Translations under genes and position numbers: made by a program
DNA from: Calcarisporiella thermophila CBS 279.70
Taxonomy: Eukaryota > Fungi > Calcarisporiellomycota
Assembly (NCBI RefSeq): GCF_041956535.1
Contig: NW_027192198.1
Coordinates: forward strand, 164,551-228,550
Reading direction: 5' to 3'
DNA length: 64,000 nt
The notes under the pieces: generated by a model
Told to the model about the DNA's origin: nothing
Database searches by the model: none
What the model saw: only the letters and a program-made list of their open reading frames with translations
In this document: positions 30,180-34,100 of the stretch, piece after piece
Position numbering within the stretch: the stretch's first letter is position 1
Layout: every line of letters begins with the position of its first letter

Positions 30180-30972
30180 ATGATATCCCCATACACGCAG
30201 CTTCCAACCTCCAATAATCGGGAGCAGCACGCCACTGTTTTAGTAGCTATAATACTAGGCTACTCGTTTACTTTTTCCTAATTTTTTTTTTTTTGTCAAT
30301 GACAGATAGTTGGGCCACCCGCGAGTGGAAAGCGTACCCTCTCTAGGCAACTAATTGAGGGAATAAAAGATGCTTCATTCAACTGGTAATTAGAATACAT
30401 ATTCCTCAATATCAAAATCTAGATCTCATTACTCTCTTCCGTAGTCGAACAGCGGAAAGTCTTCCCCTTCCATCAGATGATAAACGACCGCGTTACGACT
30501 TTGTTATATTTCTACTTGACTTGACAAACAGGCAGAGTTTCGATCAGTTTCAGCGTTCACTACCCTGCCTGTCGCCAGAATTCCTGATGGGGCGATCCTG
30601 CATAGTTCTTACTAGAGGTATCTTCTATGCTTTATCACATCTATCCACCGTTTTTACATGGCATTTTCAACCATAGCCGACAAAATTACACATTACAGCT
30701 TTGACAGCAAGGATGTTAAAACCTATGTCGAACAATTTTATGACATCCCAATATTCCATACAAATCTTTCGGTAACGGGTTTGATATTTCTCTCCGTAGA
30801 TTTCTAGGCTAATCTAAGTTGCAACCGCTATTCCACTTAGAATGAAGAAGAGAGGGCTACTCTATCGGAGCAGCTATTCCGCTGCATACAGGTATCGAGC
30901 GGGTATCAGCCCTTCATAACACCAGCACGAGTGCACTCCATGATGATGGGAGACACATTTTTGGAGCAATAG
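30180..30972 (+). CDS. CENPM: Centromere protein M (CENP-M), 180 aa; exons 30180-30242, 30306-30385, 30445-30617, 30677-30771, 30841-30972
   Basis: Spliced: MISPYTQLPTSNNREQHATVLIVGPPASGKRTLSRQLIEGIKDASFNCRTAESLPLPSDDKRPRYDFVIFLLDLTNRQSFDQFQRSLPCLSPEFLMGRSCIVLTRADKITHYSFDSKDVKTYVEQFYDIPIFHTNLSNEEERATLSEQLFRCIQVSSGYQPFITPARVHSMMMGDTFLEQ. Colinear with human CENP-M motifs (ATILLVG, SLPLP...RPRIDLIVF, FFLGKVC, RATMAQRL). Absent from the ORF track. Confidence 0.88.
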
Positions 30973-31130: not shown

Positions 31131-34100
31131 ATGTTCGGAAACACGTATGTATACTTAGTTTTTCTTTGATTATTTTTCCCATGTCAATTCGAGTTTCGTT
31201 AATTATCATACAATCTATTTTATAGATCCAATTCAGGAGGGTTCAACTTTGGCCAACCTCCAGCTACCACTCAAACAACTGCTGCTGGAACGCCTGCTTT
31301 CAGTTTCAGCGCAGCTACTCCTGGCACAGCCCCATCTCTGACTTTTGGGACATCCACATCCACATCAGGAGGAGCTGGGAGTGGATTTGCGTTTGGTTCT
31401 ACGCCTGCACCTGCTTCATCCACAGGTGGTTTTGCGTTTGGTTCGACGCCTGCATCTGGTACATCTACTGGTGGATTTGCCTTTGGAACGACACCATCTT
31501 CAACTACTACCACCACTGCTACTACTACCTCTACATCAGGAACAAGTGGTTTTGCTTTTGGATCTAGCACTCCTGCCCCTACTTTTGGCTCTGCACCCAC
31601 TTCATTCGGAGCTACAGGATCTACTGCTCCCACTAGCACTCCCGGACTATCCTTTGGCTCGACGCCAGCAGCCACTTCTGCCCCTTCCAGTTTGGCAACT
31701 CCGTTGTTCGGCTCTACGACCGCGCCATCAGCAGGATCTTCTGGCGGGATCTCTTTCGGCTCCACTCCAGCAACTTCAACTGGAGCATCTAGTGGATTCT
31801 CATTCGCAAAACCAGCAGCAAGTACGACACCCGCTGCAGGCGGCTTTTCTTTAACCTCCACTACCTCTGAAGCAGGCTCCTCTGCTCCCAAATTCGCCTT
31901 TGGATCCACCACTCCAGCACCAGCTACTACCGCAGCAGCACCTGCCGCGGCCACAGGCGGGTTTAATTTCGGAACACCCGCTGCAACAACAGGCGCAGCA
32001 TCTGCACCTTTGTTTGGATCAGCTGCAACCCCTGCGCCCTCCTCCACACCAGCGTTGGCAGGAGGGTTTGGTTTAAAGGCACCCGCCTCCTCAGAGGCGG
32101 CCACAACCACACCTAGCACCACCTCTGCGCCATCGTTTTCCTTTGGGTCCACTACTTCTGCTCCAGCTGCAACCACTGCACCCGCAGCCACAGCTACAAG
32201 TGGATTCTCTTTTGGAACACCGGCCGCATCTATGGGGTCAACCGAGGCCCCTAAACTTTCGTTCGGATCAACCACTACCTCTACTACCGCCGCAACCTCC
32301 TCAGCAACTCCATCTTTTTCCTTTGGTGCAAAAACAGAGACTACGGCTGCACCTGCAGCTAGCTCGACCGCTGCTACAGCGGTGACAACAGCTTCAACGC
32401 CTGGGTTCTCACTTAAACCCCCCGACACAACGACAACACCAAGCCTGTCCTTTGGGACAAAGCCTGCCACCGCCACCACTACCACTACTACTTCTACTAC
32501 CACCACTACTGCACCTACAACCAGCGCAACCACCACCGCTACGACTAGCGCTCCAGTGGTCTCGAGTGCGACCACCACAGCCGAGCCGTATGTATTCAGC
32601 TGTTTATTACACTGATCCTATTTGTTCATAATTACAACCAAACTAATCTGTTTCTGCTCTACTCTATAGTGCTAAACCAATGTAATTTCCCTAGCCTATA
32701 TGCCTCGGATGGAATACGCGAAAGACTCATTTTCTTTTAACCCTTTTAATAGTGTAAAAATTACAGATCCCCGCATGGTGGTTAAAACCTCCAAATATTC
32801 CGAGTTGCCCGAGAATGCACAGCGTTATCTAGACGAAGTTGAAAAACACATGCGAGCTCAAACGCAGATTCTTGAGTCTATCAAGTCGCGGCAGACCAAT
32901 GATCTGATTCGTAAGGTGAAAGAAGAGGTCGATGGTCTCTCACAGAAACTGGCGTCCGTCAACAACGCCCTAGAGAGGGACATCGTGGTAATCGAGAGCG
33001 TGAAGCGGCGTGCGACGGAGGAACTGCGCAACTCCGAGATGGCCAGCCGTGTTATAGACGAGCTGAAGAACCCACAGCGGAGCATGTACTCATGGGTGAA
33101 TGCTACATCTGAGTGAGTAGCTCGATTTGATTTTCTTGGATATTGCGCTTTTTCAAAAGCCTAACGAGGATGATTAATGCAATTAGCTATTTCTGGAATC
33201 TGGCCAATTCCTTCGAGACTCGAATGGACCAATATCGTCAGCTGATGGAGGTAAGAGGGGAACTTGGCAGGCTTTTTTTTAAAATAAAATTAAACATTGG
33301 AGTGATTGTGTCCGTTTCTAGGACATCGAACGGCATCTCTCTTCTCTGTTGCAAAATCCAAGATACACTCCTCAAGGTAAGCATGAATGGCTGCTGACTT
33401 TGCCCTCGTTCACTGATTGATCATATGTTGAAATGGCTGTGTTGTATAGCTGTCGCACAAATTATACGCAATCAATACGAGTCTTACCTTGCTGTCTCAT
33501 CCAAGGTACAGTCCCTCGATGAAGCCGTGAAGAAGCACCGTGAATGGTACGCTGCCTATCGTAAGAAATGGTTCGGGGACGAACGCAACCCATTCGCAAC
33601 ATTGAAGCGGGTGAAGCGGGATGGTAATATTTTGAAAATCCGGATATTCTACTGCAACGGGCTTTAAACTTACCTCCATACCAGGTCGAGTGGTGGATAC
33701 TGTCACAAGCGAGGAGGAGATGCGGTACAGTCTTGCTGCTTCTCAGCTTATCCCTTCGGCGGGGCAACAGCAACAGCAGCCTGCCACCACCACTGCTGGC
33801 TCTTCGCTTTTCGGAGCTAGCGCTAACAAACCAGCCGGCTTAAGTCTCTTTGGCTCAAAGCCTGCAACAGGAGGTGGCCTGTTCGGCGCTACTAGCCAAC
33901 CCCAGCAACCAGCCGGAGGACTATTCGGCAGTACGACAACCACATCCGCCCCTGCCACGGGTGGGCTTTTCGGCGCAACCCCAGCCACCAGCACGGCCGG
34001 TAGCCAATTGTTTGGCGCAGGAGCGGGAACAACCACAACCACCGCTGCCCCCACGACTGGCGGATTGTTCGGCGCTTCGTCAACCCCGAGCACCGGATTA

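Follow-up and report, generated by a model that had tools for sequence, protein, structure and literature searches.

[quoted passage not shown] The gene lies at positions 30180-30972 on the plus strand of a 64,000-nt stretch of NW_027192198.1, which is referred to below as the window; all positions within the gene are given on that strand and counted from the first letter of the window. The first-pass annotation had read the locus as five small exons encoding a fungal CENP-M of 180 aa. It had further proposed that a P-loop-like motif, a Rab-like segment and a G4-like motif mark the protein as an intermediate between small GTPases and pseudo-GTPases, which might make the inner kinetochore sensitive to nucleotides.

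Structure of the gene

The coding sequence comprises 543 nt (180 codons followed by a TAG stop) in five exons. The four introns, all of which are bounded by GT and AG, measure 63, 59, 59 and 69 nt, and their G+C content is 29-41% compared to 45.7% in the exons. If the frame is read from the start without splicing, a stop is met at codon 34. Exon 1 (30180-30242), which opens with the first in-frame ATG past an upstream stop, encodes residues 1-21 and is followed by intron 1 (30243-30305; 29% G+C), inside which an in-frame stop is located. Strand β1, the P-loop and helix α1 are all encoded by exon 2 (30306-30385), which supplies residues 22-47 and two bases of the Cys48 codon. Beyond intron 2 (30386-30444), the core of the CENP-M domain is contained in exon 3 (30445-30617), which completes the Cys48 codon with one base, encodes residues 49-105 and ends on the first base of the Ala106 codon. 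Intron 3 (30618-30676) interrupts the TRAD motif after that first base, and exon 4 (30677-30771) completes the Ala106 codon with two bases and goes on to encode residues 107-137. Residues 138-180, including the predicted C-terminal helices α5 and α6, follow intron 4 (30772-30840) in exon 5 (30841-30972), with the stop codon at 30970-30972.

In an exhaustive protein search the translation of exon 3 was 100% identical to residues 49-105 of a public 180-aa protein of Calcarisporiella thermophila (phylum Calcarisporiellomycota), XP_069252453.1 / KAL1921187.1, annotated as "uncharacterized protein VTP21DRAFT_10903" and denoted here as P0001. The in-frame translations of the five exons match residues 1-21, 22-47, 49-105, 107-137 and 138-180 of P0001 in this order, and the codons split at the exon joins restore Cys48 and Ala106, as in P0001. 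The five-exon, 180-aa reading and the fungal origin claimed by the first-pass annotation are upheld, the gene model residue for residue. The exons were searched singly rather than joined, and the full-length analyses described below were performed with P0001. The identical public gene call, the unbroken homology over the junctions and the high-confidence predicted fold together support the splice structure. A single CENP-M locus was found in the genome (28 Mb in 116 contigs).

The database record is still filed as uncharacterized despite a precomputed match to the Pfam family PF11111, an annotation gap that should be closed by naming XP_069252453.1 (VTP21DRAFT_10903) CENP-M. The next gene downstream, from 31131 onwards on the same strand, contains FG, FSFG and GFSF repeats in the open reading frames at 31692-32615 and their neighbours, and resembles FG-nucleoporins.

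Family membership and fold

A Pfam search with P0001 returned the CENP-M family (PF11111) as the best match, with a score of 116.5 bits (E 1e-33) against a curated gathering cut-off of 25 bits. The alignment covers profile positions 4-171 of 174 in a single stretch that spans all four exon junctions. Exon 3 on its own (57 aa) scores 56.2 bits to the same profile, and exon 5 alone aligns to profile positions 138-171. Exon 2 alone gives weak matches to P-loop NTPase families, under the cut-offs of those families. The other Pfam matches of P0001 are likewise below cut-offs; they fall within the N-terminal P-loop region only, and nearly every one is to a family of P-loop NTPases or kinases. Among sequences in the PDB, human CENP-M was matched over residues 12-172 with an E-value of 1.5e-18, and exon 3 was sufficient to retrieve it (E 2.7e-7).

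The structure of P0001 was modelled with AlphaFold2 from an alignment of 45 family members (mean pLDDT 91.7). A Foldseek comparison of this model with chain M of the human CCAN (7pkn_M) gave a TM-score of 0.85 and an rmsd of 1.8 Å over 170 columns, whereas Ras, Rheb and Rab structures reached 0.46-0.59. The model in the ESM Atlas has a TM-score of 0.84 to a CENP-M cluster. Five strands are present in the AlphaFold2 model (residues 17-23, 45-51, 67-73, 99-104 and 131-133). Helix α1 (30-40) passes straight into the strand equivalent to β3 (45-51), leaving out the α1-β2 loop, strand β2 and switch I. The same five-strand fold without strand β2 and switch I has been described for human CENP-M (PMC4080450). 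Profile score and predicted fold confirm that the protein encoded at 30180-30972 is CENP-M, in agreement with the first-pass annotation.

Relatives of the protein are not readily retrieved by short words. A search by 5-residue words returned only P0001 itself, and a 45-sequence profile returned the query and two others; CENP-M is too divergent for shared words, and the result has no bearing on whether relatives exist. The second-nearest cluster to P0001 in the ESM Atlas (score 0.92) is an unnamed family drawn mostly from Asgard archaea (Promethearchaeota). These are probably small-GTPase-like proteins, an assignment that we offer as a lead only. The PDB also holds a second solved 'Centromere protein M', chain J of 9okb (also 9okd, 9oke, 9okk and 9okl), a very divergent protein of 180 aa whose alignment to the family profile (40.5 bits) begins only at profile position 62; a literature search found no paper naming these entries.

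Nucleotide-binding motifs of the protein

The Walker A-like G1 motif GPPASGKRT (30312-30338; residues 24-32), part of the segment IVGPPASGKRT (residues 22-32), falls on the G1 column of the family, for which the profile consensus is "VLlvGaegvgkktLa" (GxxGxGK). Arg31 occupies the place of the Mg2+-binding Ser/Thr. For a random protein of 180 aa with the same composition, the probability of a G.{4}GK match at any position is ~1.5%. Since the motif sits on the family G1 column, it is inherited rather than a chance match.

A Rab-like β4-α3 segment, DLTNRQSF (30518-30541; residues 73-80), lies where the family consensus 'DltnreSf' aligns to 'YDVTNEDSF' of Rab3, and the G4-like TRAD (30611-30681; residues 104-107, split by intron 3) lies where the consensus 'vvtkadkp' aligns to 'GNKCDME' of the same protein. 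All three motifs pointed out by the first-pass annotation, including TRAD at the G4 position, are accordingly found on the matching family or Rab columns. The G5 (SAK) columns are occupied by a non-canonical TNLS (30760-30771).

Elements required for metal binding and catalysis are missing, as they are from the human protein. The G3 motif DxxG is replaced by TAES, and in terms of Ras the Mg2+ site is gone altogether: Ser17 and Asp57 are replaced by Arg and Thr, respectively, and Thr35 was lost along with switch I. The region of the base-stacking Phe28 has been deleted together with the switch I region. In the segment SLPLP (30458-30472; residues 53-57), where ESLPLPS of the fungal protein aligns with KSLPLPS of the human one, Leu54 corresponds to human Leu52 and is the equivalent of Gln61 of Ras. 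Leu is found at this column in 52 of 56 family representatives and has been described as an invariant feature of CENP-M (PMC4080450).

Distribution of the G1 and G4 motifs in the CENP-M family

The significance of these motifs depends on how widely they are shared. A set of 61 family representatives of 140-300 aa was assembled, 56 of which have the N-terminal region and form the denominator of the motif counts. GxxxxGK is present on the G1 column in 25/56 representatives (~45%), from Amoebozoa, Holozoa, Fungi and invertebrate Metazoa, with cnidarian, mollusc and brachiopod proteins among the last; the canonical GK[ST] is found in 3/56, and a G4 motif of the form [NTS][KRHNQ]xD in 13/56. The residue that follows GK in the 25 holders is His in ten, Arg in five, Lys in four, Thr in two, Gln in two, Ser in one and Leu in one. 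The Mg2+-binding Ser/Thr has thus been replaced in 22 of these proteins, in 19 cases by His, Arg or Lys.

Both motifs are found in the CENP-M proteins of the amoebozoans Physarum (GKRT and TKAD), Balamuthia (GKKT and TKVD) and an Acanthamoeba cluster (GKKT and TRVD), of the filasterean Capsaspora (XP_004363684.2; canonical GKST and THVD) and the choanoflagellate Stephanoeca (GKLE and TKTD). Pigoraptor has GR instead of GK along with TRVD at G4. GxxxxGK[HQ] without the G4 Asp occurs in Exaiptasia, Lingula and Mytilus, whose records bear the name "centromere protein M" or CENPM, in an unnamed protein of Solemya, in a cluster with Liolophura CENP-M and in the ichthyosporean Sphaerothecum; G4 is absent in the entire metazoan clade of the family tree. 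The chordate Branchiostoma has lost the G1 motif. Paraglomus, the sole other named fungal representative among the matches, reads GPPSVEK, with the second Gly lost, and has lost G4 as well.

A family tree computed after removal of the motif columns requires no fewer than 11 changes of state in G1 and no fewer than 7 in G4. Retention of the two motifs appears to be associated when representatives are simply counted (raw Fisher p 0.0013), but we reject this co-retention as a sign of function: in a phylogeny-aware test only 3-4 independent pairs are available and p = 1. The G1 Gly, Gly and Lys and the G4 Asp persist among proteins that are ~31% identical overall, a subgroup that was chosen by those motifs, so that the observation is circular for the motif residues themselves.

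The retention of a P-loop had already been recognised by Basilico et al. (2014), who noted its conservation in distant CENP-M proteins and proposed a stepwise decay in which the loss of hydrolysis (Gln61 to Leu) preceded that of the remaining GTP-handling features (PMC4080450). With GxxxxGK in 25/56 representatives, in the family consensus and in print since 2014, the notion that the Calcarisporiella thermophila protein is a notable intermediate between GTPase and pseudo-GTPase has to be given up; it is an ordinary member of the CENP-M family. GPPASGKRT and TRAD are most likely ancestral family characters common to many non-vertebrate lineages and not peculiar to this fungus. Because G1 is found in 25/56 and G4 in 13/56 representatives, "loss of nucleotide-binding motifs" is a description of vertebrate CENP-M and not of the whole family, and the textbook statement that "CENP-M lacks a P-loop" is one about vertebrates.

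Kinetochore partners and proposed role

Profile searches of the genome located homologues of the three partners of CENP-M, namely CENP-H (C36:38448-38759), CENP-I (C4:529974-530874) and CENP-K (C4:81627-82190), as well as the cupin domain of CENP-C (C15:393695-393972; above cut-off). CENP-L, CENP-N and a CENP-T-like histone fold are also encoded. [quoted passage not shown]

Of the set CENP-H/I/K/A/C that the first-pass annotation had suggested surveying, only a CENP-A-like H3 was not recovered: no divergent H3 was found in a six-frame, exon-by-exon search of the genome, in which a CENP-A split by introns could be missed. Six H3 loci (C1:923258-923497, C1:1389256-1391150, C13:233626-233925, C13:706843-707284, C29:20432-20850 and C29:149297-149715) have histone folds 85-100% identical to canonical H3, and the weaker histone-fold matches are to an H2A variant, H2B and NF-YB-like, TAF12-like and CENP-T-like proteins. 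For Umbelopsidales, the presence of CENP-C in the absence of CENP-A has been reported (bioRxiv 10.1101/706580).

Taken together, the data point to an ordinary structural CENP-M, a reading in which we place considerable confidence. Calcarisporiella thermophila has one CENP-M gene, and its product, which is folded like a small GTPase but lacks switch I and strand β2, most likely serves, as in humans, as a constitutive structural wedge that stabilises CENP-I in the inner kinetochore complex CENP-H/I/K/M. GTP hydrolysis and nucleotide-driven switching would have no part in this role, and the motifs would be ancestral remnants. From orthology we infer that the protein binds CENP-I and localises to kinetochores. 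Two human CENP-M residues needed for CENP-I binding, Leu94 and Leu163 (PMC4080450), align to Met96 and Ala166 in the fungal protein, which counts against the wedge role.

Does the protein bind nucleotide?

The strongest competitor of a purely structural role is that the protein is a pseudoGTPase holding GTP or GDP as a permanent structural cofactor, without Mg2+ and without hydrolysis, with Arg31 mimicking the charge of the metal. It would apply to those CENP-M proteins that keep G1 together with the guanine-specifying Asp of G4, that is, to the proteins of Physarum, Balamuthia, the Acanthamoeba cluster, Capsaspora, Stephanoeca and Calcarisporiella thermophila, and their existence speaks in its favour. 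So do the three representatives with a fully canonical GK[ST] and the recognition of exon 2 alone by P-loop NTPase profiles, below cut-offs though it is. The Pro-Pro-Ala-Ser filling of the loop should keep the phosphate-binding backbone NH groups free, by analogy with the Arf-type GLDAAGKT and the kinase-type GxPGxGK, which again favours a held nucleotide. Moreover, human CENP-M folds without the motif residues, so the fold does not demand them.

Against this stand the absence of all three residues of the Mg2+ site, the deletion of the base-stacking Phe28 region and the non-canonical G5. The numbers of state changes on the family tree imply that both G1 and G4 are often dispensable, and the raw association between them vanishes once phylogeny is considered. 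Human CENP-M itself binds neither MANT-GTP nor MANT-ATP (PMC4080450). On balance, we consider a nucleotide-holding pseudoGTPase a possible but rather doubtful alternative to the structural wedge, and the same tentative standing is given to residual, Mg2+-independent guanine-nucleotide binding by the fungal protein, as judged from its motifs.

A broader version of this proposal would make the CENP-M proteins of non-metazoan eukaryotes true guanine-nucleotide-binding subunits of the inner kinetochore, Mg2+-independent and non-hydrolysing, with the basic residue after GK in place of the metal, and the nucleotide-free state of the human protein late and derived. We regard it as unlikely; if true, a bound nucleotide would be a structural cofactor of the CCAN in most CENP-M-bearing eukaryotes. 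The persistence of the motifs at ~31% identity hints at selection on the pocket that a purely structural wedge would leave unexplained. As far as the literature searched shows, nucleotide retention in CENP-M has been assayed for the human protein only. The CENP-M of a thermophile is a handy protein for such a nucleotide-binding test, and it also suits structural work on a fungal CENP-M-containing CCAN.

Much less credible is the suggestion of the first-pass annotation that the inner kinetochore is nucleotide-sensitive, with the GTP or GDP state of CENP-M acting as a switch that regulates inner kinetochore assembly. The presence of G1-like and G4-like motifs is all that speaks for it. A switch is unlikely because no Mg2+ ligand is left and because switch I, strand β2 and the DxxG of switch II are absent. 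[quoted passage not shown] We judge such a switch to be highly improbable.

Alternative family assignments

Two other identities were considered for the protein and rejected. The first, an ordinary Ras- or Rab-type small GTPase taken for CENP-M, draws on the GTPase-like fold and on the fact that the CENP-M family profile reaches Rab3, Rab27 and Rab1 with E-values of 6.5e-6 to 1e-3 over the half containing β4, G4 and G5. It is ruled out by the Pfam scores and the structural comparison: at E<=1 the Pfam search with P0001 lists none of the Ras (PF00071), Rab, Arf and Roc families, as opposed to 116.5 bits for CENP-M, the TM-score of 0.85 to CENP-M compares with 0.6 or less to Ras and Rab, and the G2 and G3 motifs are absent. 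The profile search named by the first-pass annotation as a way to expose a Rab or Ras protein has thus returned CENP-M.

The second, equally negligible, is a relationship to RazKIN (PDB 9d8a; PMC11571804), a GTP-dependent RNA 5'-OH polynucleotide kinase that occurs in Mucorales as a stand-alone enzyme, and to its sibling 9drz, a protein of 165 aa described as "P-loop containing nucleoside triphosphate hydrolase". Residues 18-172 of P0001 align end to end with residues 6-162 of 9drz_A (E 1.4e-6, 31.4 bits), 9d8a_A is a weak match (E 0.035), and these collinear matches extend past the P-loop; however, the idea fails at the level of both family and fold, since neither kinase is among the best 60 PDB matches of the CENP-M family profile (last E 0.0017), where Rab proteins are present, and the top 50 Foldseek matches include no polynucleotide kinase. 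The genome also has separate loci for tRNA-ligase kinase domains at C1:410387-410881 and C20:539367-539558. By our estimate, the ~13 extra bits beyond the shared β1/P-loop/α1 segment are about what chance would provide over the P-loop chains of the PDB; the 9drz match would then consist of this segment plus chance, and be specific to P0001 rather than a property of the family. The tRNA-ligase kinase domain (PF08303) scores 51.1 and 41.6 bits at the former of the two loci and 25.5 bits at the latter.

Comparison with known systems

Human CENP-M (PDB 4P0T and 4WAU; chain M of the CCAN structures 7PKN, 7QOO and 7XHO) belongs to the same Pfam family as the Calcarisporiella thermophila protein and has the same fold. 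The two proteins are both 180 aa long and ~27% identical; both lack switch I and strand β2, and both contain SLPLP with Leu at the position of Gln61 of Ras. [quoted passage not shown] The main difference lies in the remnants of the nucleotide-binding site: neither the P-loop (VGTEDALL in its place) nor G4 (ATGAG) survives in the human protein, whereas the fungal one retains GxxxxGK, with Arg for Ser/Thr, and TRAD.

In this respect the fungal protein resembles the non-vertebrate CENP-M proteins that keep a P-loop, which belong to the same family, have GxxxxGK on the same column and are each 30-36% identical to it. The protists among them keep T[KRH]xD at G4, like TRAD, and Physarum has the very same GKRT. 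In CENP-M proteins of invertebrate metazoans, in contrast, GK is followed by His or Gln and the G4 Asp is missing.

Among early-diverging fungi, CENP-M has been published for Mucor circinelloides (Navarro-Mendoza 2019, as related in PMC7729030 and PMC9252888); the main text of the bioRxiv version of that study mentions neither CENP-M nor Calcarisporiella. [quoted passage not shown] Mucor is described there as being without CENP-C, whereas the genome of Calcarisporiella thermophila has the CENP-C cupin.

The nearest active relatives of CENP-M by profile are Rab1, Rab3 and Rab27 (E about 1e-5), and the 2014 crystal-structure paper found the Rab family to be nearest by fold as well (PMC4080450). 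A YDxTNxxSF-like segment and the NKxD position are common to Rab GTPases and the fungal protein. Rabs possess G1 to G5, both switches, the Mg2+ ligands and six strands, while the fungal protein is devoid of G2, G3, strand β2 and the catalytic Gln.

Human CENP-M is taken by us to be a class I pseudoGTPase, that is, one that does not bind nucleotide. Members of this class use the GTPase fold as a scaffold for protein-protein interactions, as the Calcarisporiella thermophila protein would in its proposed role as a structural wedge. If its remnant G1 and G4 do bind nucleotide, this orthologue would belong instead to the class of pseudoGTPases that bind nucleotide and are catalytically dead.
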